A stretch of 64,000 nt of DNA, from the NCBI GenBank assembly GCA_965202585.1, contig OZ241828.1:54002001-54066000 (forward strand), read 5' to 3'. The notes below the pieces were generated by a model that saw nothing but the letters and a program-made list of their open reading frames with translations, did no database searches and had not been told where the DNA came from. Below are positions 32,845 to 64,000 of the stretch, piece after piece. The DNA is from Thalia democratica. Its lineage: Eukaryota. Each line of letters begins with the position of its first letter. Positions within the stretch are counted from its first letter, which is position 1. The position numbers and the translations under genes are program-made.

Positions 32845-33757
32845 ATGTACAAGAAAACTACATCTATTCTATGCCTTATGTTGGTTGCTTTGTTATTATT
32901 GGAAGAGTCCCATGGTCAGTACAAAAACGGCATGTACAGCCGACTACAGAACCATCAAAACAAGCGCGCTCTCCCAAAAGTCCCCAGGGTAAAACCCGCA
33001 GTTGATAATTTGGAAGGTTCGGACTCTGCCATCCAGCAGAAGCCGGTTTCTGATGGCGGGTACCAGGACATTTACCAGCCACCAGTCTACCAGCAGCCCC
33101 AGTTCGTCGAGGGCGGCGTCCGACCTCCCAGGGGCAACGTTTACCAGGACCCTTACCAGTACAACCCGCAACCGCCACTGTACCATGGCAACGGGTTCGG
33201 CAGGGACGTCTACCAACCGATGAACCAGTACAACCCTTACCTGTCGAATCAGCCGTTAAGCAACCAACCGCCCTACTACAACAACCCTTATAACAACCCG
33301 GTGAAAAGTTTCAACGGTCACAACCAACCTTATTTCAAAGGCAACCAGGTTGGCGGCGGCTTTGGCGTCCCGTACCAGCAAAATGACAGGCAACCCGAAA
33401 ACAGGCCGGGAACAGAAACTGAAGATGCGAAAGAAGAGGAAGTTGTCCCCGATCCCCAGGAAAATTTCAACCAGGAAAACTTCGGGAGAGACCAGTACGG
33501 ACAGGGGTTCGGTTTAAATGTGAATCAGATACAAAACTACGGACCGAACACGGACAGCTACGGTGGACCGATGAATAACTACCAGGACGGTGGTTACAAT
33601 TTCAACTACAAACCGCAACATCAAGGTGTTTCCATGAACCAAGTTCAACCGGACGGCTTCAAACCAGCTTATTATGGAAATGACCAGTTCAGAAATTTGC
33701 CTTCTGACGATTACCAGCAAGTACCAGCTTTTAATGAAAACGCATTCGCAATTCCAG
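32845..33757 (+). CDS. FBLN2: fibulin exon 1: signal peptide and Q/N/P/Y/G-rich low-complexity region
   Basis: aaaATG MYKKTTSILCLMLVALLLLEESHG...AFAIP G|gtacac. Confidence 0.88.
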
Positions 33758-36700
33758 GTACACTTTTGATTCTTTTTTACCAAAACCATTTTGAATTTAG
33801 AAAACGAATTCGGCTGTAGTACGAAGAATATTGTATTTTACATACAATCTTCAACACCAATTTTAATCAATAGAAAGTATTTATATTTCTATCTTTTTTG
33901 TAATACTTAAAATTTTTGTGGCGTCTAAAGAGTTGTTTTCTAATTGAAACTTTAAACAGTGTTAAAGAAAGTTGAGTTTAGTAAATTTTAAGCACGATTT
34001 TAACACACTTTTATGCGTTATTTTGTACTAGGGTATTGAAAGCCACAAAAGGCAAAGTTGCTTTGTACAAATACTTTTGCAAATATTTGAAACGCAGTTG
34101 TGGTCAATACAAATTCCTAAGCTTACTTAAATTATCAAACATTTATTCAGTGGCATTTGAAACGATTATGTTTGTACATGTGTTTTTGTAAATCGTAATT
34201 TGGTTTTTGAATACTAGTTTATTAAATTACACTAACCAATGTAATTCCTCATAGACGTTTTTAAATTTTTAAAACTTCATAAAACTGCTAAAATTAAAAT
34301 AGTTTAAATAAAAACTATTTAATTCTAGCTTCATTTAAGTACAACTTACATACTTAATAATAATTAGAAAAGTAGTTTATTAGTTTACAGAAGCGTTAAT
34401 GTAAGTTATACAACTTTATATTTTTTGTACTGAAGTCCTGAAAAAAACTTAACTAGTTTCATGACTTATTGCAGAAAAGCAACTGAACAAAATAAATACC
34501 GGAAACAACAAACAGTCAGCTGTGGAAGATTGCAACAACTGTCCGGAACTGAAAAATTGCTTGAACATCACGGACACCGACTGCTGTCCCAAGTGTGAGC
34601 AGTACGGTTGCATCTGTCAGGGATACCAGAGCTACGACTGCATTGACAACGGGTACAAGTTAGTATTGTTTGTTTTTACTTTGCATTTCACAAAGAAAAT
34701 TAAGACAAAAGTTAAATGAAAGTTTCTGGTAGTTTTACTTTTTAATATTTTTAAACATAAATTTAAACACTTTATAAACGCTATAAAAATATCATCTTGT
34801 TTTTCAAAAATTGTATTTAATTTGTTGTCGCGAAGTTTTTAAAAGTTTTATCAACCTGAAAATAATTCACAGAGACAAAAAAGTCCCCGAAGGCGAGTCT
34901 TACAACGTTGACGGGGGAAGTACCGTGTGTAATTGTCCAATGGGAGGAGGGCAAATTTTGTGCAGGTTCGACAATTTTTTAAATAATACTGTTTATTCAT
35001 CAAGTTGTGCATTGTATTTGATTGAAGACAGTTTTATAGATGTTAGAAAAAGTATTCAAACAATTATATTATTATAAATTTGATTAGACTTAAGCCAAAT
35101 GTAGTAATCGAGTTATAGTTCGTATTGAAGTATTTTTCTGTGTTTAAACCCCATTTATAAAACACATATATATAAGTTACAAAGAATATTTTGAAAAATC
35201 AACTTAAAATTTTTATTTCCTTAATTCAATATTAGTTTAGTGTTTTTATGATCATAAAATTAAAATACAAGCAAAATAAAAATGTCAAGGTTTAATAATT
35301 GTTACGTAAGACCATTAGTGTCTTAAACGAAAAATAAATACTAGTAATTAAAAAAACTTTTTTAAAGTAATTAAAAAATTCAAAAGAAAATCGATAATAA
35401 ATTAAGTTACCTCCAAAAGTTTCTTTGTTTACGTATTAGAGGATAAAATAAATATATTTTAAAATTGTAGACTTATTTTACTCCGTTTTAATTTTTCTTT
35501 GTTTGAGTTTTTAGAAATCTCGTACAATACTCAAAGTTTTGTTGTTTTCCGCATTATAATTTATTATTTCTAAGCCCATTTTTTATATTTTGTAGCAAGT
35601 AAAACATTACCATGTAACCTATCAACAAATTTTAAATGTGATTTAATATTATTACTAGAAATGATTAATCCAGAAATTTTTTTTATGTTCTAGATTATTA
35701 CTAAATTTCTAAATACATAATTGGTTTAACTTAAATTAACAATGTAATTACACATCTATCATCATAAAGATAAACTTCTTATATCGCTATAATTTTTTAA
35801 ATACTGAGAAAAAATATTAGTTACATATTTATTATATATACTTTAATAATTTAGAGATTAAATCAAAAGTTTACTTTTGTTTTACTTCCGTTTCTTTGCT
35901 TTAAATTTACCTTAACTTTGTAACTTAATTTGCAAAAAAAAAAATTTACTCTTAACTATGAGCAGTGCACTTTTGAAAAAAAAGGTAAAAAAACTGACTA
36001 CAAAAAGTTTTTATTCCTAAAACAAAAACAACAATCCAACATTTTTGTCCAAATCAGTTTAAAGTTTAACAAACAAAAAATTACTATCAAACGCAACACC
36101 CGTTATAACTTCTTCCTCGTCTTTCATTTTTCCCTGCTCGCAATTAGAAACGACAAGTTCGCGTTGAAAGCTTACTGTGACGTCACAACGCTTCGCAGCT
36201 ACGTGGACGTCAGTATGGAGAGCAGCAGCTCGCAGGCGGGGCAGCAGCTGACGATCAAGTGCATGCCGGTGGCGAGGGGCTGCTACAAGACGCTGATGCG
36301 CTACGACGGGTGCGAGGAGTGCTTGGTGTTCGGGTGCGAGATGAACGGCGTCAAGACCAAGGCGGGAGACAGGTCGGTTGAAACGGATTGATTTTCTAAA
36401 ATAATGTTTGATAGTTGAATTTTTCATTCGTTTTTTGCTTAGACGTATGTGGCTTTTATTCTAATGTAAAAAAAAAGCTTAAACCTTACACTGTTTTTAA
36501 ACTTTTTAAACCAAGGCAAAGCAAGCTTTGATAGTTTTTAGTAAACGTGTGTAGCTTTTATTTAAAAGTATACAATTTAAAAAACCATAAACTTTCATAA
36601 GACCTTTTTTTTAGATATCAAAGCGACGAGTGTACGGATTGTTTTTGTCCGGATCTGGGTGGTGAGTTTGTCTGCCGCCAGAAAGAATCTTGTGGTCAGA

Positions 36701-39700
36701 ATAAGGAACAAGGTATTTCATTTTGAATTTTTTTGACAAATTTTATATTTTTAAAGTTTCTTACTACCAAATCAGAAAATAAACTTTGTTCATATAGCTA
36801 AAGTAAAGTAATGTATGTTTTTGATCATTAAACGGTTGTTGCATTTTAAAAAATATGGTGTTACTAACATGGCTGCTGTTTTAAAGTGTAACTTTGAGGT
36901 TTTATAAACGTTTTTTTTAATAGAAAAAATAATAATTAAAACTCTTTCAAAAACATGTTGAATAGCATATAACGTATGAAAACTACATGAGTTTTGCATT
37001 TATAACGATACGTTTTTGCAAGCAAGTTTAATAACGTATTACTCACTGTGTTTTCACATCACCACTACTTTTACTTTAAAATGATAAATATGCGGCATAA
37101 TTTGATAAAATTGCAAATTCCTCTCTAGTGCCTTGCAAAAACTCTTTAAAAAAAAATCACGTGACTAACACCTGGCTGAGACTTACAAACTTTTTTTTAG
37201 ACTCGATGAGAAACTTGGGATATGAAAGCGGTTACCATTTACACACAGATCCCCGCCAGGCGTCCATCCAGTACGCCGACGACCCCAACCAGCCGAGCTA
37301 CGACCAGCAGATGGGCGGCAACCAGTTCGTGCAGGAGATAAACCCCTACGACATGAGGTTCCCCGGCAAGATGCAGGCCCTCGACGACGTCCAGAACGGC
37401 ATGACCGGCGATAAGAGCGCTCAAAAACCTGACAAGGTCAACTTGGAGCAGGAAAGCTTCAACCGAAACCCCTACGTCGGTTACGGGCAGAACAGCTTCC
37501 ACCCTGATTTTCAACCTGGTGTTTACCGCAACAGTTTTGAAAACAACTACGCTCAACCGATGGTGCAAGACGAGCAGAACGCAGTCGATTACCAAAACGA
37601 AGCTGAAGTTAAAACTGAAACTGACTACTTTGGAAATAATCAGGACAACTTTCCTTTAAATAATAAAAACAAGCTGGAGAACGACGAGTACGCGAACCCT
37701 GAACTGAACGCTCCGTTTCCGCAAAGAAACCAGTACTTGCCAGCAAGTAACAGGTTTCAGCCAGGAAACCAAGGAAGGTTTGAACAGGACTACAACAGAG
37801 CAAATCCTGATAACGGTTACTTTAGACCACGTGAAAACGATCTATACGGAAACCCGATAGTTCAGCCAAACATTGTTAAGCTAGAGCATAACCCTGTGGA
37901 ACAAAACAACAAGCACGGGTTCGTTGAACTAGATTCGACACAGACGCAAAACGATAATTCTTTCACTGGCAATTTGAACAGCGTTCAAGATAAGTTCAAA
38001 GAAGAGCAGCCAATCGTTCAAGACAATAAAGCCAACGACGAAGTTGCTACCGTTGAAAAGTTTCCTGAAAACGTACAAAGCCCGGGCGTGATGAATCAGA
38101 ACGGGTTTCAACAGAACCCGAGGTTTGCGGGGCACAACAGGTTTCCCCAACCTTACGGACCCTTCAACCCGTACCAGTTCAACCCGTACATGCAGAACGT
38201 GGGCAAGAAGTTTCCCGACGTCAACGGCCTCGTGCCGCCGCTTTCAATGGACAACCAGGCGGCCATCCCGCCCCAGCTCAACCCCTACCTCAACAACTTC
38301 GGCGCCACTCCCATGCTTCCGAGCGGCAGCCAGTTTGCGAACCAGCAGGAAGCAGTTCCTCGGAAGCAGGAAGCTTCTGCTGGTGACGGCGCTAAAGACC
38401 AGTTCGTGCTTCCCATGTACAACACGAACAAAGACTCGGGTGGCGACAAAGATGAAGCTTTAATTAAAGAAAACCCAAAGTTGTTGGAAGACGGAAGTTC
38501 AGTGAGAACCTTTTCTGATGAAAGGACACAGGTTTCAAAGGATAATTACGCGAAAGATAGCATAGCCTACGACTCGGTTCAACGCGAGCAGCCAAAGGAG
38601 AACAACATGTTTTACCATAGAAGACCAAACAAATTAACATCGCAGCTATCGTTAGCAGAAAAGTTAAACTTGCTGATAAACAAAAACAAAATAAAAACTG
38701 AGGAAAACAGTGGTCGGCAAAATACAGTAGCTGCTACAAGCAAGCCAAAAACAACTCGTAAGACGAAGAATTTAAAAAAGATTGAAACAACTTTGAAATC
38801 AACAACCACAGCAAAACCTACAACAACAAGAAAATTTACAACAACAAGAAAACGTACAACAACACGAAAAATTACAACAACTACAAGAAAACCTACAACA
38901 ACTACACAAAAAACAACAACTACACAAAAACCTACAACAACAACACAAAAACCTACAACAACTACAAAAAAACCTACAACAACTACACAAAAAACTACAA
39001 CAACTACACAAATGCCTACAACAACTACACAAAAACCTACAACAACTACACAAAAACCTATAACAACTACAAGAAAAGCTACAACAACTACAAAAAAGCC
39101 AACAACACAAAAAACCACAACTAAGAAAATTACGACGAAAAAAGGGCCAACAACAAATACACAGAAAGCAACCGCTAAAGATGATTCGAATGTTGCATCA
39201 AGCAGCAGAGACCAACCAAAAAATCCTTGGCAAGACATCAACCTGCTTCCAACTAGCAACGATTTTGAAACCTTCGACAACTTTAAAGAGCCAACAACAT
39301 CGACACAATCAGCTGAAATTGTAAAAAATAGCTACCGAGAAAACTCAGACGATCAAATATCATCTGTAAAGAACCCAATAGATTACCAGTACACTGACTA
39401 CCAATACACGAGTGATGCCCAGCCGGTAGATTCAGATTACTCGCCGTATCACTTCAACAGCATAGACGAGCAAATGGAGTTTCTGAGGAGTTTGTATGAA
39501 CCTAAAAACGAAACAGAAGATCAAAGCAGCAAGTATGTGTTACTAAGCTTTTTTTATGTTAAACATGTTTGAGAACTGTTCAAAAATATAAAATAATATA
39601 ATTTATTGAAAATTGAATGTCATAAAAACTGTAATAATGCTTTTAAAAGTATGGTAGTCAAAGTAAAATGGTAAAACCTTTTATAAATCTTAGTATAATT

Positions 39701-42700
39701 TGCTTTAAATTTTTCTAAGCTGTACTTATAAAAATTTAGTGCATAGTTTAACGAAACTAAAGAAATTCAATTTATATGAGAAACAGTCCATTGAGATCTT
39801 TCTTAAGAATCTTAAATGGGCTGGACTTTCCTAACTCCAATACGTCACAAAAGGCAAAGGCGTGATAATCGTGCTTTAATTTAAGGAGGGTCAAACTTTT
39901 CAAGCACTCTTGACTCGCTAAATCAAGTTGTGACGTCACAATGACAATGTGAAAGCGAGAAGCTTGGTAGCTCAAGTGTTATTTCTTATCTACGTGCTTT
40001 GTTAACTTTCAAGTTCTCATCATCGATCTATTTTTTTTTACTTTAGCACCAGTGTTCAACATTCTTTCTTTGAATATTTCTATTTGCTTTTTGAATTAGT
40101 ATAAAAAAATTATCAAAAGAGTGTTAGTGAATATAACAGCTTGTGCACATAAGTTGTTTGCATAGTTTGATGAAAGAGATTTTAGTTTTACTTAATCGCT
40201 GAATGCTTTTAAAAGTTTTCTCTCACTTGAATTGATAAAGGATCTTTGCCTAATATGTCATTATAAGGTTCATTTAAACCACAAAAGGCTCCCGTAGCCG
40301 TCAAGATTATATTTACCTTTATAAAAGTAAATAGGGCTTAAAACAACTCCCTTACTTTTTTCATTTGAGCGTGTTATAATTTGTTTTTTTATTTTATAGC
40401 TCATTAACTAAAGTCAAAATATAATGTCAAAAAACTTTCGAGTGTATATTTTCTATCATTTGAAACTAAGCCAGCCTAAACGAAAAGTAAATAAGTTTAC
40501 GACATTTTTTATCTAAGTTTGATTATGTATACGAAATTACTTTTAAAATTTTTATAATAACTTAATAAATATTTTAACTATAGTTGTTCTAAATGTATTA
40601 CTTAAAATTAATACAAATTTCAATAAAATGTGTAAAAACATAAAATTTTGATTTTATTCTATTTTCTTTAAAAAAAAGTAATTTTGTTAAAACGTTAAAC
40701 TGTCCAGAAAAAAAATATTTTCAGTAAACAAAGCTGCCGCGTTGTATTTAGGAGTTTTTTATAAACAAAGACTTTTTATAAGATTTTTTTTTATATTCGA
40801 CTGTTCCAAAAAATACTTTAGCTTCAAAGAGGTAAAGATGATATTTCCTGGCATTATAAACTTACTTAGTGAGTCTGCTTCTAATCATTGTTCTAAGCTC
40901 TAGACAATGTTTTAACGCATGTACATTGTTTTACACATTGTTTTCACGTCATATGTATAAGTTTGCTTGGGTTTATACACAAAAAGTTTTAGGATTGCAA
41001 ACTAGCTTTAGAAATGTTATGTACCACATGTTTTTTATAAACTTATATTAAATTATTTTCAGTAAACAAAGCTGCCTCGTTGTATTTAAGCATTTTTTAT
41101 AAGATTTTTTTTAATATTCGACTGTTCCAACAAAATACTTTAGCTTCAAATAGGTAAAGATGATATTACTGGCATTATAAGTTTACTTAGTGAGGCTGCT
41201 TCTAATCATTGTTCTAAGCTCTAGACAATGTTTTAACGCATGTACATTGTTTTCACGTCATATGTATAAGTTTGCTTGGGTTTGTACACAAAAAGTTTTA
41301 GTACTGCAAACTAGCTTTAGAAATGTTATGTACCACATGTTTTTTATAAACTTATATAACACACAGCGGTAAAGAGTGTTAGTATTTCAAGCACGTTTGA
41401 AATAATTGAGCTCATTTATTTTTTTTTCAAAGCTCATCGCTGCCCGACTACCCGGCCTACGACCAGACCGACATGAACTACCAGACGAAAATATTAGAAA
41501 GTTTTCCGAAGTACGATCCGGCCGCGTACAGCTACCAGTATCACGATTATGACGCTTACTATGACGATGAGTTGCCCGTAGATGATGCAAGTTAGTAGAG
41601 TTTTGTTATAAACAATTAGAATAAAGTAGTACAAAAATCAATTATTTTTATCGTAAATAGCAAAACACACGCTAGGACTTTTACAAAATTCAACTAGCAA
41701 TAAACAACTAAACTGTTTGAAAGTTTTAAAAGTTCAAATAGCTTTGTCACATTATTTTAAACATATGTCCTGACTTAAAAAAAATAAAAAAAATGTTTGA
41801 ATAATTAAGCTTAACACTCAAGTCATTTGTACTTACAAGTTGAAAAACTATTAGTGGATGAAAAAGAAATAAAACAAAAGCGATTTTTAAAACAACTCAA
41901 AGTTTTAATGAAAAATCGACTTATGCATAAAAACGCGCCTTATAAGGAAAACAATTGAGCTGAAGGATTGATAGAAATGTATACCTCATCATATGATTTC
42001 ATTGTCGTTAAACTAGCTTGAAAAAACTACGAGCAAAAACAATTTTTGTTTATAATAGCTAGAAAAATATTTAATTGAAGTTATAGTATTAAAGTTTTAA
42101 AGTACTATAGTTCAAATATAACTTAAAATGCTTTAATAATAAACTGTATTTAAGAATATGTAAGGTAGACTACAAAGCTGAAACTTTGAAAAAATTTAAT
42201 AAAAAGATAAAAGTATATGTCAAGATAAAAAATATAAGTATCAATGGTTATTCTACTTTTTTGCTACTACAACTTAATCTACTTAACAATTACCTTTAAT
42301 ATACAAGGCAAAAAATTATGACATTAGTTTTAAAGTATAGTTTCGAGACTACAGAATAAATCATGTATAAGCACTTACCAAAAAAATCTTAATGGGTTTT
42401 GAATGTCAAAAAAGTAAATACACATACAAAGCGCCTAAATAACTATGAATAGTTGTATTGTTTTTAAGTGGAGTAGCTTTTAAAATATTTTACCTAACTA
42501 AATTTTCTATAAAGCTTTTTATTCATAACATTTGTTAAGTAAAGTAAACTTTACAGTATATGCGTATATAAAAACTATTTTAAAAGCTACGACCAAAAAT
42601 TTAGTCACAAAAAGCAGTAGGCTATGTAATGTAAACTTGGCTTAAGGCTTCTTTTGTAAAAACATTTTGTTTGAATCTGCAGAGTTTTCAAGTATTTACT

Positions 42701-45700
42701 TGTTTATTTTCTATATAAATAGTGTCGTAGAAAAATTTTATTTTCCCAGAAAATCATACAACTTTAAGTTTTTGATGTTATTGTTTTTTATGTTTCGCTT
42801 CAAAAAACATGACAAGCTCTAAGCAATAAAAACAATAAGGCTTACAACTTTTTTATGAAGCGTTCTGAAATAATAATTGCTAAAGCTGGTCTCAAGGTCT
42901 TTTTTGATCAAAAGCCGCATATTAACTAAGAAAATTAATCAATTTCAAGTCAAATTTAACCAGATAAACAGATTTAGCGTCTAGAAATTTTATGCTACGT
43001 ATAATTAATATAAACCCTAACATGTTTACAAAAGTTCTTTTATGTTCTTCAAACATCAAAAACTAATATATTTTATTATTTGCTCGTGCAAAGTAAGACA
43101 TTATTTAATTTGAGGGAATTTAAAAAACTCGCCGTAATTAAGCACTAGCTGATAGCATTAAGGAGATTAGGCAGCTATTTGGTTAATACGAAGGAGCTTT
43201 AAAAAAGTTCAAGTTATTGCTGCAGTGTATTAGCAGAGCATAATAATTAGTCGTGCAAATTGAAAGCGCTGAAGAATATCAATCTTACTTTTCATAATTT
43301 TCGTAACTATCAATCTAAGTTTAAGCTAAAAAAAATAAAATATATATTTACATGTTGAACTTTCTTTTACTAAAACATTTCATAAATAAAACAAGGCCAC
43401 CCGTTTGCCTGACATCTACTTACCAGAGCGGTACCACTAATTCAATTAGTTAATAGACACTTAAAATAACTTTGAAAAAAAAAACAGCTCAGGTGTTTTG
43501 CTGGGTGTGTTCTAAACAGCACATATTGGAAAACATTTTTAGCTCCTTTTAAGCTGATTGCCATTGAATTTGCGCGCAGAACCGGAAACGCAGTGTCGCG
43601 CAAAAATTTCCTTCCTCTACATCCAGCAAGCCGTGTGTAGTCGGCTGACGAAAACAAACAAAACCTTTGTTTCTCGCGCGATCTGCTTTTGTTTTAGCGC
43701 TCAAACGCGCACTGAAAACAAGACCACAAAAGAAGGCTGCATGTGAGAACCCGACAAAGAGGCTTGCAGCGTGTTTGTGTTTGGACCTCGTGTTTACATT
43801 CGGCCCGTGAAAAGGCTTTGCTGCTGCTGCGCACAAAAGTCGAGAGCTGCAAAGGCGAAAACAACGGCCGGTGAAGGAGTGCGGAGAAAAGGCGCTCAGC
43901 GGAAAACCGCGCAACACAAAAAGCTGAAAGCGGCTTTGCAATTAGCCAGAGCAATTCGTCAATTCATACAGAATAAAAGTTGTAAACACCTCTGTTTGCT
44001 GTAAAGTTCGCCCCGGCTAGACTAACGTAATAGAATGTTTATTGTTGGGGTTTATCACTTGTTGTGCTGGTTTCAGCAAATCAATCAGCTCTTGATGGGT
44101 GGTCCCTCGTCTATTTTTGTTGTACCCCCGTTTTAACGGTGATATTTTTTAATGAAGTTGATCTCATCGAGCTCGTTTGTCTTTCAACTGCTAACGTTGT
44201 GATGGCGAGATATTTTTTGTTGTTAGTCAACAATTACTAACGGTCTTCAGCGTAACTATAATTGGCACATTTGCTTATTTCTTTCGACCAAAACTTTATC
44301 AAGCTTATGGTTTTCGTGATTTAGTGTTTTTATGGGAGATTTAACTTTTTTATGCTTGTTTACAAAAGAGAGCACGTTTTGGCTGTGGTTTCGATGAAAA
44401 CTAGTCGTCAAAAGTTAGACTTAACCGTTGTTGTGTTTGCGCGTTTGCTATTAACTGTCTAAAATAAAATAAGACCTCTCGAAATCCAATGAAATAGCTC
44501 CGAGCGCTGAATGATAGTCAATGGCTTGTTTTTATTGCTTTAATATTTCAGTGCTTCATGTGATTTGAGGTAGAAAGTTTTCAAAGCTACATATGAAAGT
44601 TTAACGACTAGAACTAGTGAGTAAGTTTATAATTTGCGAATAAGGTAAACAAAGTGGTTGGATTAAGTTTGTAAATTATACCTGTGTTGTTTATGTTACG
44701 CTAATGACAAAGATGTAGTTAATTGAACGTACACTTATGTATCTGGTTCAAATGAGTATACTAACTGCTATAATACTTTTAATATTGTCTTAAATGAAAT
44801 GTAAGCTTTTAAAAGCAAATGTTATTAAGATATTCACTTAAAACCAATTAAAGTCTTTCTTGAAAATTCTAAGAAGCTTAAGTTTTATGAGCAACAAAAT
44901 TTTTTCAAACTTCACAGCGCAACCTATACCAACCAAAAGTAGCACTTTCATACAATGGAGTAAGTTTGAAAAGTATTTGCGCCTACCGACTGCTTCTTGC
45001 ACAATGAACTGCTATAAATAACCGAAAGTCTGGCAATTTGCAGCCACCGTTTTTACATACCTGCCCTCTACATGTGCAGCATCTTGATTGATTGCTGAGC
45101 GACGCCTTTACATTTGCAAATGTAAAACGAGCAGTCGCGCACAATGGAAGGCTTGTTACATCGTGCGTTACATAGTAGCAGTTAGCGCTTCTCAAAAATT
45201 TCTATTTTCGCGTCAAATTGTTTGTTTGCCAAGGCGAGATGTCGGTAAACAAACTGAATAAACATGTGTGGATGTAAAATACAGCTTTTATTCTGATCTG
45301 AAGTGTCAAACCGTTCAAACCAAATGTTTGGCGTAAACCTTGAAAGTTTGAATAATAGGTTGATTATACGAACTAGTTTAAGTTCAAAACGTAATTATCA
45401 TTACAATTATTTGATATTAACTTTTCCACTTGTTAGTTCGTACAAGTAAAGCTACCTTTGAAAACTTTTAATGCGGCAGTTGTCATTGTTTACGCTGTAC
45501 AAAAATAGCGGGTACTTAATGAATGTATGTTCAAGCTGTTAGAAAAAAGTATCGAACAATAACAAAACTCTTTTGTTTTTACTTCAACAAAGTTATTGTA
45601 CATCATTGGTATCAATGTCTGTATCGTGAGAAACAATATTGCAAAAATTTAATCGTTAATGAACAAGCTCAAGTAAATTAGTAAATAAGGTTGTAAACTC

Positions 45701-48700
45701 AATCAGATTAAGCTTGCAGCGAGGTGAGATGTTATTACGAACAATTAATACTTGACATATAGCAAGCATTTTTCAACGATTATACTTTTTTTATTTAAAC
45801 AATACAAGACGTAACTTTGATGTTATATATTAGTTTCTTATGACCTTTTATTTCATAAGCTTCATAATGCAAAAAAAAAAAAACTTTCTTTCATCTTTTT
45901 TTTTCTTTGAACTTAAAAGTAGACAGGTTTTTTTTTTGCAATTGTTTTAATTTTTGAAAAGTAGCTGTTTTTAAAATACTAACGGTTTTTTTTCGACTAA
46001 AAACTTATAAAAAATATTAGTATAAAATGACATAACTTATTTTTTGCACCATCTCGTAGGAAGCTGTCATTTTCGATGTTTTAGATGTCTAGGTAAGATA
46101 ACAAGATAAAGATAAAACAACTCTTTTATCTCGCAAAGCTTAGTAGTTTTCTATTTAACAACTGTTTCCAATCAAGCTTATATCTGTTTTATATCTAAGA
46201 AAACCACACACATGGTACTTTTTATCTTTAAAGCAATGATAAAAACATATGGAAGCGCATATAAAACATCGGAAAGAGATGTTTATTAGGTCATTTGTTA
46301 CAATAAGATAGCTAAACAACAAGTAGAACAAAAAGTTATATTTGAACGTAATCAGTCTGTTTTTGTTTTCAAAAGAGTTATTGTATTTAATGAATAAGAA
46401 TTGACGTTTTAAGTGGAGTTTTTAGCATTTAAAAAAAATAATACTATTATTATGTTATTGAATAAATTACATGAAGTGAAAAGTATTTCCCAAAGTAACA
46501 ATTCTTTTATAGTTTCAATAGTTTAGTTAAACCTTTGTTTTATTTCAAAAAAAAATTAGTAGAACTAAATAAGATTCCTTTATATTTTTATTAATATCAA
46601 AAATCTTATAAACTTAAATTATTGATAATATACTAATTTTAAAGCCTATCTCATAAATATTTTTATAAAACTAACAGTGTACAAAAAAAATATTTTATTA
46701 TCGTCTTTTATAAGTATAACAAAGATACTGGTTTGGTAGATTTAAGTACTAAATAAAAAGTATTATTTTTTCAACTTAAAATCTTGCTTTTTGTTAATAA
46801 AAAAGATTATAGATCAAAAATTTATTAATAAAAAATTATACACTGATCAAGTTTCTGTTCTTCAAACCATAAATTTGAAATGAAATTCGTTTTATTTGCT
46901 TTGCTCTCCTTAAGTGTAATATCAGCAAGAAAGTTAGGTAAGAACCTATTTCATTAATTTTAATATATGTTGTACTATTTATTATATTTATACTTGCTCA
47001 ATGTTTCATCAGTAAAAAATAGTTTATAAAACAATTAATTTCAACTCTGTTAACATTTCAAAAGGTGATCAACTACTAGCAATTTTACTAATTAATAAAT
47101 AAAAGGAAGTTGAATACATTAAATTTTTTTGTTTTAAGCTCGTTAAGAGCTTTTAAGTTTGACTAAAAACTTTAAACAGTTTTCAAAAGTCGTTAATAAC
47201 ACTGGTTTGACCCATAACTTAATCAAGTTGTTGTTAACCCAACTTGCATCTCGCTAATGCTGCACGTTTTTTAACCAGCGGCTTCCAAATATTCGCAAAA
47301 ACGAAAAACGCTAATCTGATTTGAATTTTTTCAACTTAGTTAGCGGTCTGTTCGCCTCGCGCGCCACAAGGCATCTGGTAAACAGCAGCGTTTATGTCGT
47401 TATTTAGCCCACAACAAACAGAAGCTGCTCAGGGGGCTTAAGTCAAGAGAGAAGGCTTAAACGGCGCTGTGTCTTTTTCTTAACAAGTGTTAATAGTAAA
47501 AATTCCAGTAGATCAGCACTGCAGTCACGTGTTTATTGAATTTGCAGAGAGCTACGAGGAAGTTCTGAACTTTTGCTGCCAGGAAGGAACGAAGTGGGGG
47601 AGCAGCCATTCCAGTTGCGAGGGAATCAACTTGAAGGTTGACGTCTACTCTCAAGTCTGCTCCGTTGTTTCTGTTAGTTTCAGATTGGTTGTAGAGCTGT
47701 TTACAAACTATTTTGGCGAAAATGTCATTTGTTAGTCAAACATAGTTTCATACGTATTGTAGATATATTTTTTAGTTTTATTTTGAACTTTAGCTTGGGT
47801 TTTAAAGTGAATAGTTTTATTAGCCTGAGATTTCGATTTTAAATACATGGCGAGAGTTTTAAAATTTTGAATATTTCATTCAAGTTAACATTGTTAGTTT
47901 TATGTGTTATAAACTTATAATTTACTTTTTCTAAACACTTTTATGTTAGAGAGAATCGGACATAAATGAAAGAGTTTGGAAACTTAAAAAGTAATCAATT
48001 TTTACAAGGCTATAATGAGCATAAGATATATTCTTACGCACAACTAGTTCAAAGAAGTTATTGTTTTTTCTAGATAATTGAAATTTAATATGAATATTTA
48101 TTTAGCTTGTTTTCGTAGCATGTTTTCTGCATAAACTAAAAAAGGGTAACAATACAAAGCATTCTATCACTACTACAAGGTTTGGTTAATTTTTCGTTGC
48201 AACTAAAATAATGTCTTCTTGTTATCAAAACAAACTTTCTACAATGGTCTTTACTTTGTTTAAAGCATCGTAGGTCAAAAGTCCTCTTAGCATTTAATTA
48301 CTAACGTTGAACTCCAAAACAACTTAACTAGCTACTTGTTTTTATTTCTAGTGCTGAACATCTACGCCCCTATTTAACCCTTTGAATTCCATGTTTGAGC
48401 AAAACCAAAAACGCTTTCTACTCCAAACACTTCACTGTAATTACGCCGGGTGAGCACAATAGCAACGAAAGCGCCGACTGCCGAGCCGATGGAGTCTTTC
48501 TGTTTGACTTCCACCAACACAAAAGATTAATTTCCCTTCCCGCCTGCTTGCCTAGCTGTACAAGCAACACTTGAAAGCTTTGAAGTGCGTCGGAATTTCA
48601 AATTTTCAACGAGAATGAGTCCTGCAGCAAATTCTGTGCCGAACAATGGCAACGATGACGCGGGCTGACAAGTCATCACGATGTCATCATGACCACGTGA

Positions 48701-51700
48701 CTTCCTGCACTTATACTTTTATTTTTTTGCATTGAAATGACAAGGTCGCTAGTTCACCATACTGTCAAGTGAAGAGGAAAGCGCAGTAGAAAACAATGAA
48801 GTAATAATTGTAAGCTGTCGCTCCAATCAAGCTTGATTTACTTATCTAGATTGCCGTGCAAAAAATAACTTCGCAAATGTTTTTATTGATTTGGGTTGAT
48901 AAAATAAAATTAATTAGTTAAGTTCGATTTGTTATATATATTTAGCAGCTCTGAAATGTTAACAATGATTTATTGCAATAATTATAGCTAAACATGATTA
49001 GATATATGTGATCATAACTTATCACAATTAAAAACAACTTTATTCGCAACTTATGATTAATGTGCTATAATAAATTTGTTTTAAACTATTAAGGAATATT
49101 TTAAAAGTCATAAGTTTACTTTTCTCATTTAATAATTAATACCGATTTACTCTGCTTAATCTTATAAGTAGACATTTATTCCGAGAACCTTTATGAATTA
49201 CGGTGTATACTTTGTTAATAGAATGATTAGTTAAAAAATTGCTTCACGTATAGAAACTAATTAATAAATGGAAAAATTATAACTTGATTAGCGTGAGAGA
49301 GTGTTGCTATAAGAGCGAACACACAACAAATTATTACTGAGTAAGCTTCACCATAAGCAGCTTTTAGATAAGGCTAACTAAATAGTGAATAATTGATAGT
49401 TTTCTGTTAGTATTTTAAAACTTTTTTGACTCTTAGCAAAACTTTTTAAAGATAAAGTTTAGGTTTTTTAACCTGATTTAACTTTAAGTTTTTTTTATTA
49501 AAGAACTTTTAAAATCGGTTGCAAAGAAATTGTTTTTCTACTGTTAAAACTACGGCATTTGAGTTTAAGCAATTTGCCACTTAACATTATCAAAGCTAAC
49601 CAAGTCAAAAGGTTACACCTTTAAAGATATATCTCTCTTTGACGTACTGTCCTCTAGCCAACATTAAAGGTCAAACGTAAAATATTTCATATTAGCAAAC
49701 ATACTTTTCTAAACTGTTTGTCATGAAATTTATCTACTTTAAAGAAAACGTTGTGACAAATGTACTTCGTTTTGACAAAATTTAAAGAGTTCATTTATAT
49801 TCAAAACGTTTTAATTTTAATCATTTTAACTTTTTTACAATGATGCGACTATTTTCAATATTTCTAAAGCTAGTAATAAAACGAAATTCAAAAAAAATAA
49901 ATTCAATAGGAAAAGTGCTGCACAAAGCAAGTGAGCGAACAATCTTGTGACGCAGGAATTCACGTTGCAAGAAACATGACGTCATGTGACGTAATGACAC
50001 AAAACAAAGACCAGTGTCAGAAGGACAATCAGAAGGTTTGTAGTAAAAACTTTTAATAAATAATACATTATTTTATAGTGCATTTTGAAATATAAAGGAG
50101 GATTACACTTAATTTTATGTTGTTTTACTGTTTTTTTTTGTAAAACATATTTGAGGACACTTTACAAAAGAAAAATGTTAATAAAGTATAGAAACTACAT
50201 TGAAACAAAAAAAAAAACAGTATTTTCTAAATGAAGTTTAAGCTTTAGTTTTAATTTACTAAAACTATCGCAAACATGAGTTGTTTAGCTATCATAACCA
50301 CTAAAAATAACGTTGAGTTTACCCGCGCTTGCACACATTTAACAAACAGCAAACACATATAAATGATAAACAGTTTATCGCTTAGCCTGTTTGTTTTGGA
50401 ATTACTCTAGCTTGTCTCTGATAAAAATGCTGCGGTGGTGTTAACTTGCTTGTTTACTTTAAACAAACCTCGTCAAAAATGCCAAGCATTTCAATCCGAC
50501 ATGTAAACATTCTCGATACAAACACGACTATTTTCTGCAGACGTGCTGCGACTGTTGCGCCCTCGGACTGAAGTCTCGAAACCTGGGGCTGAGCTGCGAA
50601 ATGCAAACTCTAGGTAAGATGCGATAAAACAAACAAAAACTTGAAAGTTAAAGTAATAAAAGTTAAAATAAAATTTAGGACAACCGTGCAGTATGGCTTA
50701 CACGAAATGCTGCAACAATGGGGAATACACTGAAGACGAACTGCAAGGTGTGTTTGTTGTTTCAATTAACCTATTTAATTTGGAACACAAAAGTTTTTTA
50801 AGGCTGAAACATAAATGAGCCTTGATCATTTTGATAACCTAATTAACTTGCCGTAAATTCTAATAGTTTTCAAGTGGTTTGCATTGTTTTCTTTCAAAGC
50901 TAAACGCTTACAAGTATTTTCTTCATACAGGCAACTTTGAGAATGGAACTGATGAAAAATTTTCAGACAGTGAGTAATAAAAATTTCACTTTTTGTTGTA
51001 ACTAACAAGTTATGTAAGAGAAAACATCGTTATTTAATTATTGTTTTGCTAAAAATAAAATATTGACTAACAAATTTTTAAAAATCTACCATTACTAACA
51101 AAAAAAAATTCAACTAACTTTTATTTTGCTTTGTATCTTACTTTCATTACCAAATATAGCATAGCAAATTTTAGATTTTCATGTGAAAAAAAGCTTATCT
51201 GCAGTAGAGATTTCAGCATTTTTGTATCCAAAAAGCTTCTTTATGATCTTTTAGCATTCAAGGGTGTAACTAATCTGGTATTAAATTATTCAAAGCTTAT
51301 TGAACATTAACATTTTTATGGCTATAAATACTAAGACACTTATGTCAAAAAAAAATTATTTAAGATATTTATATCTACTGTGTATTAAAAATTTAATCTT
51401 TAAAGATTTCATACAGCTGCTTTAGTTAACCCTAATTGCTTTTTAAACCTGTTGAAATCAAGCATGTAAATCTCAGGTTGCCATGAAAACAATTGTGATC
51501 ATGAGTGCGCCTATCGCCATAGCAATGGCACTTTCAGATGCCGGTGTCGTCACGGGTTTTATCTCCATGACGACAAAAAGACATGTCTAGGTGTGTGTAA
51601 GATAATTCGTTTATAAATTGTTACTTTGAAGTTCAACTTTCTGACAAAGAATTTAGCTTACTCTTACCAAATTTTCTTTTTATTTAGACCTGTTGATTTA

Positions 51701-54700
51701 ATTTAGCATGTCGTACATAGCTTATAGAAAGTAGAAAACAGCTTTTAGACATTAACGTTTTTGTAAAACTGTCGTACATTTTGATTCTATCTTTAAGACT
51801 ATTTATTTATTTTTTAAGCTCAATAAATTGTAATATTATCAAACCAAACATCACTTCTATACACCAAATATGTGTTGAACTTGTATAACATTAGTCTTTG
51901 GCGTTCATCTATTACAAAATGCTTGAACAAGTAATTTTTGCAACTCTAACTTAATAATTTTTAAATCTAAAAAAAAACTTTTAAAATATACTACTTAGTT
52001 TTCTTTTTTGTTCAGACACGAACGAATGTGCGCTGGGAACCCACAACTGCAACTCGGGAGAAATGTGCTTCAACACGGAAGGAGGATACGAATGCAGGAG
52101 GAGGTTGTCGTGCGGCACCGGCTACGTACTCAGCAATGACAACACTTGCGAAGGTAACAACTTTCAATAACTAGTATTAAAAAGTTCAAATAACATAATA
52201 TATAGTCTACCGAATCAGTTTCAGAATCACACAGTTACCTTACTTTTATTTGGATATTGACGAGTGAAGGTACACTTAAGTTATTGAAATAAAAAATTGA
52301 ATAACAAAAATTCAAGCAATTGGCGCAGCTAACACGGCCTTGAGTTTACTTTTCGAAATCACAATAAGTTTTTTATGTTTATTCTGTTTTTTTTTTCTCC
52401 AAATTTTTTGTTTTTCAGATATTGACGAGTGCCTGCTGAAGATAGACGGTTGCAGGGCGTCAACGACCTGTCTCAACATCGAGGGGTCTTTCAGGTGCGT
52501 GCCGAAGCAGTGCGGGTCCGGGTTTGTCACCGACGCCACCGGTGTCTGCATTGGTCAGTTGTGGATAATGCATTTTTATTAGTTTCAAGGTTGCAATTTA
52601 AACTTTTTGAAAAACATATTTATGGGAAAATTAATCTGAAGTCAATTAGTTATTTTGTTTGCATACGAAACTAGAACATATCGAGTCGAAAGCGCAGTTT
52701 TATCTTAATTCGGTGTAAACAAACGCGTTTTGTAAACATACCCAACATGCCTTCTTAATACGGTAATAAAGTTTACACATGTTTGTAATATAAGCCGAAA
52801 CAATAAAACTATTGTTTGTTGATATAAAAATTGAACTACTTTTAAAGTTTTATTTTAAGTATTCACGAGTAATAAAACAAACCAAGTTGATAGAGTTAAA
52901 AAGTTTGTAGATTTTGATAGCTCTATGCTATCTGTAAAAATACAATCAATTACATTTGACATTTTGAGTAATGGAAATTTCTTGTATAAAGATAAATTAA
53001 CATCGAAACGATAACAATTTTTATTTATCTTTTGATTTATCTTAACCTATTTTTACTCTCACATTAGTTTTAAATAAACTTTATATCTATTTATTGATAT
53101 AAATTAAATGTGAGCTTTTTAATGCTAGCTTTTAAACTTTATTAAAATTACTTAAACACATATAAAAAAACTTTTTATGTAGTGAAACAAAACTTACTAA
53201 ACGTAAAATACTCAAACAACTGATATCTATAACTTAAAGCAATCGCTTTTGTCGATAATAATAAAGGTCACTACCTAAAAGCAATAAATGCAAAGTTTGT
53301 CTTATGTGAAACATTTGCATTCGTGTTTAATTAATGTATATTTGTATCATTATTTTTTATATAGCCTGTAGACATTCAAAATTTTTGTTTTTTGTTTAAG
53401 ATTTCTGATTAATTTGTAAAAAAAAACATATTTCAGATTTTATTGTTCGAAAATTCTGTTTATTTTAAGAATTAAAAACTTTAAAAATAAGTAGATGTAA
53501 ATTATTTAAAAAGTTGTTTACAGCAAAATACAAGTTAATTTTTTTAACCAGTTTAATGTTGTTTTTGTTTTTTATTTCAAAATAGAATATGAAAAGGGTA
53601 AAAGTTTTTACAAACAATACAATGTTTGTACGAATCTAACCACTACTGTAGGTTTTTCTAATAAAAATCAAAAACAGTTCAAAAAGTTTGAAATCCATTT
53701 AAACAATTAGATACAAAAAACAAACGTCATACAGATTGTTAAGCGGTTTTGGTTTAAGTTTGATTAATTTTAACAAAAAATATATAACAAAAGAGACAGG
53801 TAAAGTTTTGTATCGAATATCAGCTCAGAACAGTTTGATATATTGTTTTAAATGATTGATAGAAAAAATTGTTTTTGTCTATTAGTCATCATCAAAGAGC
53901 TAATTGTAATGAACTGTAAAAATAAGTTTTCACAAACTATAAGATATATCTGCACAAAGTTAAACTTTGACTTAAATAATAAAAACGATGTTTTTTCTTG
54001 TAGTGTGTAAGTTATAAAAACCTGGTTAAAAAATAACTTATAGTGTTCGTAAAATTATCTTCATACTTTAATATATAAAGTATAAGTTTTCGATAAACAG
54101 CTCAAATTAAATTATTTTCAATTTAGAAAAAAATTAATTTGCGGCAAATAAGCTGAATCTAAAGCTCCATGCTAACGAAAAATTACTAATGGGCTATATT
54201 ATATTAAAAATACTTTTCTGGAGTAATGAATTATTAAAGTATAGCAACGAGGTTAATCTTATAATTGCGGTGTGAGATTTTTGCCTACATTTTGTCGTTA
54301 AAACAGCGCGCAGTACAACGAAGCATAATTATACACCTCAGTTTAACACCTACACCAGAGAAAAAAAAGGTGCAATTTTTTCTAAGAAAACTTACAATTT
54401 ACGTTTAGAATAAAAAATTTGGTTAAATTTAAGATCATGCCCAAAAAATTGGTTTGCAATAATGTACTTACAACTCTACACTTAAAAAACGTTCAGCATA
54501 TTACATTGTATTATGGAGCACAAATAGCTGATTTATTAGCAGGGAAACAACAAACTGAAATTCATTGCATAACACGAGCGCATTTTCTTTGTGGCTCTGA
54601 GAAATATTTAGACAAGTGCTGTCTCACCGCAATCATTAAAATTTGTGTCTGATTTGCTGAATTCCAAGAATATTTCAGAGCGCTTCGGCACCGCTGTATA

Positions 54701-57700
54701 GAAAAAAAAAACTTTTTCTTTTGCGACCTTGCAAAGCTGCACGCAAATTAAATGGTCGAGCCGAATGGCCGCCCGCTTACTTCTAAATCCCCTCCATTGT
54801 AGGCTGCATTAGCGTGCGGCGACCCCGAAATACCATATAAAGCTGGCCAGCAATTGTGGGAAAAGGGAGATACTCTTGCCCAGTGTTTTGCCTTGGAACG
54901 AGATCAAGATTTTTACAAATTAAAATTTTGCACTTTCACGTCTGAAAATAACTATTTTTTTAGGCCGATTGCTTTTTAATTAACACTAATTTACAAGCGA
55001 TTTCAAAGTTTCGGTCTGGTTTTAATCCGCGCTCCTTAAAACCTATCACGGCATTTTTGCTGCGTTAGTAAATTTGAAAACAATTTCGAACAAAATTGAA
55101 ATAAAAAACTAATTTGAAAACTAGTATTCTAATTTTAGGCAGCAAAAGTTTAAGAATTTTAATTTTGCAGACATCAACGAGTGCTTCAGCAGGGACTACA
55201 TCTGCCCGCCCACCGCTACCTGTGTGAACATGGCGGGAGGGTACGAGTGTCACTGCGAACACGGGCGCCAGCTCAACACCGCTCGCAACACTTGCGATGG
55301 TTAGTTTTGAAAACAAATTTTATTTTATCATACGAATGCATGATAGTTTTTTTAGTTAATTGACATTTTTTAAGTTATTTGTGATTTTAAAAGTTTAATG
55401 TGCTAGGCTACAAGAAGAATTTAGCTAAGAAATTGTATTTATATTTAAACATTGTTAAGAAACATCCATATTAGGTCTAAACTCTATCAGACTATTATGC
55501 TAGTTTGTGTACACAAATGTCTTACTCTTTCTACTTAACCTTTACTGATACATGATAATCAAAAAAAAATATTTAAAACTTCTAAAAGATATTGACGAAT
55601 GTGCATCGCCACTTCTGAACAACTGTGACGCATCAATCGAAGAATGCGAAAACACTGAAGGCAGCTACAAATGCAACAGGATTCCAAAATGTGACCCAGG
55701 ATACCAACCGTCTGTTTATAATGATACCATTTGTGTTGGTAGGTATAAAGTTTTACATAGACATGCTTTATAAAAATTGAACCAAGAACATAAAAGTATT
55801 AAGTATTACAATAACAGGGTTGTTTTTTAATAACATATGAATGTTTACTTAATCTTTTAGTCAAATAAATTCTTAATTTTATTAAGTTACACAAAACGAT
55901 TTTAAAGACGTAAGTTTTAATAAATTATTTTAGATGATAAATTTTAATTAGTTTGTATTTAAAATGTAAAATTAATAAATGCACTATAAAACTTACCAAA
56001 AAAAAAATTCTTACAGACATCGACGAATGCAATGAAGGGCTCCACAGTTGCCATGGTGACGCGTTCATCTGCGTAAACTTGGAGGGCACTTTCGAGTGCA
56101 GGGAACCAGCAGTGTGCCAGGTGGGCTGGAAACAATCTGAAGACTTACTCTCGTGTGTTGGTTGGTAACTTAAGCAACTAATATAAACATCCTTAAAATC
56201 TAACAAAGTATATAAACTCAATTTAAAATCCCTTTTCAGATGTAGACGAGTGTATGATGAACAGTTGCGGTCTAGGGGGTTTTTGCGTAAACAACCCAGG
56301 TTCGTACGAGTGTGTGTGCAATCAGGGGTGGCAGCTGAAAATAACTGATGACGGTTACACCTGTGAAGGTTGGGTTTTATCTGATAACTTAATCTCGCGT
56401 ATTTGTTTGTGTTCGCTTTTGATGCAGTAACATGAGAGTTAGCAATCAAAAAGTAGGCGATTGAAGTTTAAGGTGTAGCTATTCAAATTTTTTCTGTAGC
56501 CCAGATTTTATCAATAATTCGAAATAGCTGAAATATTTCTTAGAACATTAATAGACACTTTAGACTTTCACATATTTAAATGGGACGAATTCATATCCTA
56601 CATGCCTCATTACATTTTCTCATGCTATAAACATTCGATAGTAATTGCAACCCAAAAACTTTATAAAAACCGATAGAAAACCGCAACCTCAAATTAACAC
56701 ATTTACTTAAAAAGCAAAAACACAGGTGTTGAAAAAAATGCTTGATTAATTCCTTGACCGACTTATTAATAATCCCACCTGTACAGATATCCGGTTTAAA
56801 AGCCAATAAAGAATTAAAATACAAATACTTGTGTGTGCGTGTGTGGTAAGAACTTCAGTCGCTGTTTCAATCAATCTTAGTTTGTAAACACTTCTAAAAA
56901 GTATCCAAAGGGAACTTCTCAAAACTGAGCTGACGTATCAGAAAGTTTTTATATTTGTGTTTTTATCAAAACTTGTGTAAACACGAAAGTTGATTTATAA
57001 CAGCGCGCTTTTGACACGGGTCATTAAGAATTCATTGTAGAGCTGTCATTTGAAAACAAGTTTTTAAAAGTCTAAAAATATCATCTTAAAATAAATATGA
57101 CGCGAAGCGTCTATATTAGTGTGTTCAGATGCCTTCTTTTTTGTCAGCTAATCACAAAGCAAACAAAAAATTCAAAAGTTTTTTTTTCTTCTTTCAGATG
57201 TCAACGAGTGCACTTCGGATGAACTCAACCCGGATTGCCAGTACAACTGCGTGAACACTCAAGGCAACTATTTTTGCGAGTGCCCGACCGGATATTCATT
57301 GATAGGCGGAAACAAGTGCCAAGGTATTTTAAGTTTTTATTTTAAATATAACTCTAAGTTTTCTCTGTTCGTTTTTTTTTTGCGTTTTTAATGATTATTT
57401 ACTCCAATATATAAAGCTACATTACCAAAATATTTGGCTTATTTTAAGTATTTTTTCACAAAGCTTTGATTTTCCATGCTAAAAGATTCTTTTTATCAGG
57501 AAATCTGACACGGTCAACTTAACCTGCGAAGACTAACATCAAAAAACTTAAGCCTTAAAATAAAATAAAAAGCGCTGGCCACTTTTACATTAACCACCGC
57601 GTGTATTTTTTCAGACATTGACGAGTGCGCGCTGGGCAGGGCGACGTGCACCGACGACGAGACTTGCTTCAACACCAAGGGAAGCTTCAAATGCGTCAAC

Positions 57701-63749: not shown

Positions 63750-63881
63750 TTACGTCACAGGAGCTTGATTAAGTGCGTCACCAGAAAAAGCTGCAGTGAG
63801 TCTTGCCTGGACAAGCCGAGGGTCATAACTCACGTCAGGGTTGACCTTTCTAGCATACCAGTGGTCCCAAGAAGTAGGGAC
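63750..63881 (-). CDS. probable last coding exon of an unidentified gene extending beyond the window
   Basis: ctag|VPTSWDHWYARKVNPDVSYDPRLVQARLTAAFSGDALNQAPVT* with coding-like composition. The window ends in CTTAC (minus-strand GTAAG donor at 64000), which defines a 119-nt intron. Confidence 0.6.
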   Translation of the reverse strand, partial: VPTSWDHWYARKVNPDVSYDPRLVQARLTAAFSGDALNQAPVT

Positions 63882-64000
63882 CTAGTCAACTTTAAAAAGG
63901 TTATAAATTTAGATCTGCTGTAACTGGATTTAAAAAAAAGTATATTTGTATATTGTCAATCTGCTAAGTTTATCTTTTTTAAGTTGCGTTTCTGTCTTAC

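Follow-up and report, generated by a model that had tools for sequence, protein, structure and literature searches.

Fibulin-1 and fibulin-2 have a major part in organising basement membranes and the elastic matrix, and FBLN1 and FBLN2 are usually seen as paralogues, with an N-terminal domain added to fibulin-2. Here, a fibulin gene of the tunicate Thalia democratica was analysed, which lies on the forward strand of a stretch of 64,000 nucleotides (contig OZ241828.1, positions 54,002,001 to 54,066,000, assembly GCA_965202585.1; hereafter the window, from whose first letter positions are counted) in a very A+T-rich genome of 802 Mb. The gene holds a core of three anaphylatoxin (AT) modules, nine epidermal growth factor (EGF)-like modules and a Fibulin_C domain, and two different 5′ parts precede this core: a long N-terminal region of the fibulin-2 type and, inside the intron that follows it, a mini-exon predicted to encode a signal peptide. 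Two proteins probably come from this one gene, a long one like fibulin-2 and a short one like fibulin-1.

The part of the gene model downstream of the mini-exon rests on reading frames together with splice sites and joints seen in RNA (Table 1). Joined to the 15 downstream exons, the mini-exon gives an open protein of 696 residues with a predicted signal peptide, three AT modules, nine EGF modules and Fibulin_C; an earlier note on this DNA had counted 683 residues, because the 39-nucleotide exon 50931–50969, which is backed by RNA joints, had been missed. Fibulin_C (PF22914) was matched at 58400–58807 with 61.6 bits (cut-off 24.6), and the terminal exon is 46–58% identical to its tunicate homologues. 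Three CC..C..C modules are found in the exons from 47548 to 50747, the first of which ends at 47672 with gttagt next, and the full-length alignment includes FBLN1 and tunicate fibulins. Since the Pfam ANATO match of the AT1 exon alone stays below threshold (17.4 bits against a cut-off of 21.4), the assignment of three AT modules rests on this alignment. The start D-[IVT]-[DN]-E-C is present in eight of the nine EGF exons, two orthologues (the Tara Oceans protein described below, P0034, and P0006) give eight PF07645 matches each, and blastp of the assembled protein matches tunicate and vertebrate fibulins. With its Fibulin_C domain, three AT modules and EGF array, the predicted product belongs with the class I fibulins. 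Additionally, a multi-exon C-terminus of the D type, reading ..SLIKCVTRKSCSESCLDKPRVITHVRVDLSS.. to ..VYLYVSPYGF, was located downstream of the single-exon Fibulin_C exon by tblastn with the C-terminus of P0034 (E 1e-7 and 4e-8 for the D-type exons). Its last exon is found outside the window, at contig positions 54067323–54067460; therefore, the fibulin gene extends past the window end.

The mini-exon opens at ATG 46880 with a coding part of 58 nucleotides, consisting of 19 codons (MKFVLFALLSLSVISARKL) and one G, and ends at 46937, with the phase-1 donor G/GTAAGA at 46938 (a slash marks the splice border). The AT1 exon follows 610 nucleotides later at the acceptor tttgcag/AG AGC TAC, where the G of the mini-exon and the AG of the acceptor side would form Glu, followed by SYEEVLNFCC. 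The earlier note had described this open reading frame, its donor and the phase-1 acceptor at 47548, and the sequence agrees, except that the start context given as AAA-ATG reads GAA-ATG. The donor reaches 8.7 bits on a matrix made from the gene's own donors, whose range is 5.7–11.6. Signal peptides were judged by a home-made n/h/c rule, which the starts at 46880 and 32845 both pass. The whole window was scanned, on both strands and in all three phases, for reading frames that open with ATG, run for 15 codons or more, show a signal-peptide-like n/h/c pattern and lead into a GTRAG donor, and it yielded two matches only, one at 1361 and the mini-exon, which is the sole match inside its 5,957-nucleotide intron. 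A third-order Markov null, trained on the introns of the fibulin gene and run to six megabases, gave an expectation of 0.011 such exons per intron of this length, and of 0.016 under a second, looser peptide rule; it is unlikely that the mini-exon arose by chance. In the DNA runs X2–X4, no variant was listed in the mini-exon, which is no sign of constraint because these runs are only about 2–3% divergent, so that some 1.6 differences are expected in 58 nucleotides.

Upstream, the first exon of the long form, modelled with splice-site scoring, presents a 324-codon open frame in DNA of 25% GC. A strong acceptor (score 9.6) stands 61 nucleotides before its ATG at 32845 and would fit spliced-leader trans-splicing. 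The Cys-rich exons that follow hold a genuine fibulin-2 N domain, as had been supposed when the region was first described as Na/Nb-like: Pfam PF24532 (FIBL-2) was matched on the frame 34787–35074 with 49.7 bits (cut-off 27), and tblastn aligned the N-terminus of mouse FBLN2 to three window exons (E 2e-7, 1.6e-8 and 7e-3). The long form of Styela clava also matches these Na-like exons by tblastn, and its own N-terminal equivalent aligns with vertebrate fibulin-2 at E ~1e-33 and 41–48% identity. The large low-complexity exon, an 823-codon open frame, contains a Thr-rich, mucin-like stretch (TTTTQKP), in which a 21-nucleotide unit is repeated 16 times at 38800–39121, according to translation and Tandem Repeats Finder; Styela carries an equivalent Thr-rich run. 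The last exon of the N-terminal region ends GAT GAT GCA A/gttagt in phase 1, and a transcript reading through this donor would add two codons before a stop, with an AATAAA some 30 nucleotides beyond (41591–41625). The equivalent read-through in Ciona also stops at once (approximately 6721–7572 in the Ciona locus), and a third, N-terminal-only product of the upstream exons is possible, as a separate 978-residue model in Ciona suggests. Several in-frame models fit the long form, whose 5′ exon borders are provisional, and the best of them give about 1,922–1,950 residues in place of the 1998 first reported. The donors at 41590 and 46937 are both in phase 1 and match the phase-1 acceptor at 47548, and the two ATG-bearing 5′ parts represent mutually exclusive alternatives.

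Table 1. Exons of the fibulin gene of Thalia democratica in the window, in order of position.
Feature	Position	Strand	Basis or remark
Long-form first exon: ATG 32845, signal peptide MYKKTTSILCLMLVALLLLEESHG, Gln/Pro/Tyr-rich region	32845–33625	+	3′ border 33589 or 33625
Cys-rich fibulin-2 Na-like domain, four exons	~34475–34658, 34873–34965, 36199–36372, 36615–36712	+	splice scoring and homology
Large low-complexity Nb-like exon	37201–39532	+	open frame; 5′ border 37201 or 37249
Last exon of the N-terminal region, acidic and Tyr-rich, Nb-like	41433–41590	+	RNA junction to 47548
Candidate alternative first coding exon	46880–46937	+	sequence, scan and null, split-codon position
AT1 exon, acceptor common to both 5′ alternatives	47548–47672	+	phase 1 in, phase 0 out
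AT2 exon	49910–50035	+	RNA joint 50035 to 50541
AT3 exon	50541–50613	+	in-frame model; RNA loose ends define intron 50614–50678
Two small exons finishing AT3, and linker	50679–50747, 50931–50969	+	RNA joint 50747 to 50931
EGF-like exons 1–5, phase 1	51477–51590, 52016–52153, 52419–52553, 55171–55299, 55589–55738	+	model
EGF-like exons 6–9, phase 1	56017–56160, 56240–56368, 57198–57323, 57615–57738	+	model
Terminal C-type exon, Fibulin_C and stop codon	58399–58810	+	Pfam PF22914
Alternative D-type C-terminus, first exon	63761–63899	+	tblastn with the C-terminus of the Tara protein P0034

The sole RNA run containing the gene is a marine metatranscriptome of 2016 kept as contigs (X1), which was examined over 46400–52399; such contigs drop rare variants and have low power for rare isoforms. 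A contig of 741 nucleotides (depth 156) was placed on 47543–47641, and its 642 unplaced 5′ letters end in TTATTATGACGATGAACTGCCCCTAGATGA (..TATGACGATGAACTGCCCCTAGATGA), which corresponds, with a few population differences, to the 3′ end of the last N-terminal-region exon. Therefore, the junction from 41590 to 47548, one of the two that the earlier note had asked for, exists in RNA, with the end of the N-region and AT1 on the same contig. The downstream exons are covered at depth 197–260, and X1 confirmed the introns 50036–50540, 50614–50678, 50748–50930 and 51591–52015, the last by the joint from 51590 to 52016. Two other collections were also searched. No candidate was found with the AT1 exon among proteins of 46–145 residues, in a collection that lacks transcript fragments of this species in that size, and an exact-match scan of Joint Genome Institute (JGI) metagenome contigs was blank for 46937/47548 and for the positive control 41590/47548, and so had no power. 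As regards the EGF array, it was observed in X1 that the EGF1 and the EGF2 exon are each preceded by the ten letters with which exon 50931–50969 closes (TTTTCAGACA), which suggests that the 114-nucleotide EGF1 exon is skipped in frame in some transcripts.

Homologous loci were identified in other tunicates. A search of 1.8 billion representative proteins with the terminal exon as query recovered models of Styela clava and Ciona savignyi. The Styela protein, XP_039251429 (‘fibulin-2-like’, LOC120328917, 1,566 residues), has the long architecture, in the order signal peptide, Tyr/Gly-rich region, Cys-rich domain, low-complexity region with the Thr-rich run, three AT modules, EGF modules and Fibulin_C, and the RNA-guided models of this gene join the N-region to the AT core. 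A search with its AT-to-C-terminus part returned short proteins in which a signal peptide directly precedes AT1: the ‘fibulin-2-like’ cDNA product CAB3245011 of Phallusia mammillata (709 residues, MLLTGYLLFLFGFAKSLAQNPASFENVLSACC), isoforms X1 and X2 of Ciona intestinalis LOC100179828 (712 and 706 residues, ..MFINFVRLIVLLTLSCVVECQLPESFENVLTACC; XP_078489164 and XP_078489117) and the Tara Oceans metatranscriptome protein ERR1719427_808436 (710 residues). These transcript-derived short proteins thus span 706–712 residues, and the identity of the 696-residue product is 47% to the Tara protein, 44% to Phallusia and Ciona isoform X1, 39% to Ciona isoform X2 and 41% to Styela. The two Ciona isoforms carry two alternative C-termini, in the same layout as in the window.

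Equivalents of the internal signal-peptide exon, which the earlier note had proposed to seek in related species, were encountered in two of these tunicates. In Ciona it is an annotated exon ending CTC CCA G/GTTTGT, with AT1 274 nucleotides later at AA AGC TTC (G/AA, read as Glu-Ser), and 2.4 kb before the 712-residue gene there is a separate same-strand model of 978 residues in which Pfam FIBL-2 is present. In Styela, the scan of the 9.2-kb intron before AT1 gave exactly one site (two adjacent ATGs with one donor), an unannotated candidate reading MNILKTGSGFACLKLSFIVFLCGISSGQE, at 28842–28929 of the OZ123518.1 locus, with the donor GAA G/GTAAGT in phase 1, 126 nucleotides before AT1; its null expectation is 0.037. 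The tunicate genes are comparable to that of the window as orthologues, forming one clade with full support and sharing 41–47% identity with its product, but no single annotation presents both forms: the long one is annotated in Styela, the short one in Ciona and Phallusia.

Among vertebrates, gene structures were compared at one locus each, Fundulus FBLN1 and Takifugu FBLN2. The first exon of Fundulus FBLN1 has 18 codons and the donor G/GTAAGG, its second exon starts AG AGC (Glu-Ser), and this junction layout is identical base for base to that of the window mini-exon and AT1. The Ciona exon, the Styela candidate and the fish FBLN1 exon 1 all close on a phase-1 G, nine residues ahead of the CC motif. 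In Takifugu FBLN2, exon 1 covers residues 1–428 and ends GAA G/GTATGT in phase 1, and AT1 starts TG TCC at the same position; intron 1 (4.45 kb) was scanned and contained no signal-peptide-like phase-1 exon. Shark and mackerel models named ‘fibulin-2’, with 786–815 residues, were considered as candidate short forms of FBLN2; none of them begins with a signal peptide, and they were taken as partial models.

The short product thus resembles vertebrate FBLN1 in its module order, in its length (696 residues versus approximately 675–703), in being 36% identical to a mammalian FBLN1, compared with 29% to mouse FBLN2, and in its first exon, a mini-exon of 18–19 codons ending in G in phase 1 before an exon that starts AG AGC. 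Additionally, the single-exon and multi-exon C-termini of the window are like those of the FBLN1 variants C and D. The difference is that the FBLN1-type exon of the window, whose use here is predicted, sits in an intron of a longer transcription unit. The long product, in turn, has the composition of FBLN2, with signal peptide, Na-like domain, Cys-free Nb-like region, three AT modules, EGF repeats and Fibulin_C, and the phase-1 junction of its N-region with AT1 falls on the same residue as in Takifugu. However, the tunicate N-region is much longer, includes the Thr-rich mucin-like repeat and is divided among about seven exons, as against one in Takifugu. By gene structure, the mini-exon is the conserved counterpart of the vertebrate FBLN1 exon 1, and the predicted locus combines an FBLN2-type 5′ part with an FBLN1-type exon 1 before one shared acceptor.

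A whole-genome search with AT1 and AT2 found this locus only, with no second AT-bearing fibulin locus, and a separate FBLN1 orthologue elsewhere in the genome was likewise not found at the sensitivity of an exon-by-exon search. A whole-genome scan with Pfam ANATO (PF01821) was blank even for the modules of the window and is too insensitive for this question. The terminal exon gave one weak second match, on contig 7 at approximately 2540000–2544650 (Fibulin_C E 0.008). About five calcium-binding EGF modules were counted in the gene at that place, and the 35 kb before it contained no AT module; with so few EGF modules, a Fibulin_C domain and no AT modules, this gene resembles the short fibulins of the fibulin-3/4/5 type. 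In a tree of the AT1-to-EGF9 core (27 sequences, LG+C20, arthropod root), the tunicates formed a clade with 100/100 support, in which the window gene was sister to the Tara protein (100/98), and vertebrate FBLN1, FBLN2 and a lamprey sequence together formed the sister clade of the tunicates (96/95). This placement favours a tunicate gene that predates the vertebrate FBLN1/FBLN2 split, in line with the earlier description of a gene of pre-duplication type, within the limits of the topology tests given below.

Elsewhere in the window, the second match of the scan, ATG 1361, opens MKLFLVLLLATLARSKPHPKA with a GTGAGT donor, and a C-type-lectin-like open frame comes after it on the same strand (1890–2189, +). 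The stretch 1361–2189 is probably another secreted-protein gene, lectin-like, with the exon at 1361 as its first.

Taken as a whole, the locus is likely to be a single tunicate pro-orthologue of FBLN1 and FBLN2, in which two alternative first coding exons are spliced to one AT1 acceptor. Transcripts beginning upstream, with ATG 32845, would add a signal peptide, the Cys-rich N domain and the mucin-like region to the core, giving about 1,900–1,950 residues, while in the other form the exon 46880–46937 would supply the signal peptide alone and lead to the 696-residue protein. The mini-exon is probably used for this short form in T. democratica. The most likely source of the short mRNA would be a separate promoter within the 5.96-kb intron, since no good trans-splice acceptor is present within 200 nucleotides of ATG 46880, where the best score is only 3.3 versus 9.6 upstream of ATG 32845.

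Several observations weigh against this reading. The depth of X1 is zero over 46800–46999, no joint from 46937 to 47548 is listed there, and in the one X1 contig that runs into AT1 from its 5′ end, it is the upstream exon that precedes this module. The long form dominates in the X1 sample and the short form is absent or rare there, which is weak evidence against the latter. Moreover, the NCBI annotation splits the Ciona locus into two adjacent genes and gives Styela long isoforms only, with no short one. Finally, the approximately unbiased (AU) tests rejected the alternative placements only marginally (p = 0.035 for tunicates with FBLN1 and p = 0.08 for tunicates with FBLN2). The original proposal that both architectures come from this locus therefore stands in part: the long junction was recovered in RNA and the anatomy and conservation of the mini-exon speak for the short form, of which no RNA was seen in X1.

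The RNA data also bear on the possibility that the mini-exon is a fossil, an ancestral FBLN1-type exon 1 that has fallen out of use in this species and left the long form only. This is rather unlikely, although it would account for a mini-exon lacking X1 coverage beside a long junction assembled at a depth similar to that of the downstream exons, and for the absence of a strong acceptor or recognisable promoter upstream of it. In an intron of 75% A+T, an unused exon would not be expected to keep an intact ATG, a hydrophobic core and a consensus donor. The short form is expressed in other tunicates, and the long architecture is common to the models of Styela and Ciona savignyi; therefore, both starts would have coexisted since the tunicate ancestor.

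It is less likely still that two tandem genes are present, an upstream FIBL-2/mucin-like gene and a fibulin-1-like gene starting at the mini-exon, with the junction from 41590 to 47548 as a product of read-through. Such an arrangement is what the NCBI annotation of Ciona depicts, and the immediate stop past the upstream donor in Ciona and in the window, where the AATAAA is near, would suit an upstream gene ending there. However, the junction contig in X1 reaches a depth of 156 as compared with 197–260 downstream, the RNA-guided Styela models unite both parts, and these parts are joined at the same codon in vertebrate FBLN2 too; therefore, the fused product is considered ancient and functional. 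That the mini-exon is a chance reading frame is very improbable: A+T-rich DNA does yield many Phe, Leu and Ile codons, and 0.32 matches per intron would be expected if any GT counted as a donor, but with a GTRAG donor the expectation falls to 0.011–0.016, and the exon stands 610 nucleotides from AT1, with its codon split exactly where it is in Ciona, Styela and fish FBLN1.

If the single gene with two first exons is accepted, a further step concerns the vertebrate paralogues. The odds are about even that, in the last ancestor shared by tunicates and vertebrates, a single fibulin gene produced both types through alternative first exons, which were later partitioned between FBLN1 and FBLN2. After the vertebrate genome duplications, the upstream N-domain exons would have been retained in FBLN2, from which the internal signal-peptide exon disappeared, and FBLN1 would have retained the internal exon alone. 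This corresponds to the known pattern of subfunctionalisation by isoform partition, in which two 5′ alternatives exist before duplication and each paralogue keeps one, and it is consistent with a Takifugu FBLN2 that lacks the internal exon and a Fundulus FBLN1 that begins with the mini-exon. The difference from that pattern is that here it is deduced from gene structures and one tree, with the marginal AU tests. The partition of ancestral isoforms had already been raised in the earlier note; gene structures and tree make it well-founded, although it is still an inference.

In the literature, ANATO has been treated as a domain acquired by FBLN2 and first detected in fish (PMC4224354). In contrast to that account, the tunicate AT modules are already joined to an N domain of the fibulin-2 type. 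No account of tunicate fibulins with two architectures was found in the full-text literature covered, which did not include Segade 2010 (Gene 464:17).

The structures of the window, of Ciona and Styela and of the two fish indicate that the fibulin-2 N domain is older than vertebrates and that a single pre-duplication fibulin gene already had both kinds of 5′ end. If this is true, the difference between FBLN1 and FBLN2 began as a difference between isoforms, and the N domain of fibulin-2 is no vertebrate novelty. Each of the vertebrate paralogues may have received one of the isoforms, which would make them a clean case of subfunctionalisation. It also follows for the annotation of tunicate fibulins that the current models are each incomplete, with the long form only in Styela and the gene split in two in Ciona. 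Tunicates would also be experimentally tractable animals in which the long and the short fibulin forms could be removed separately.

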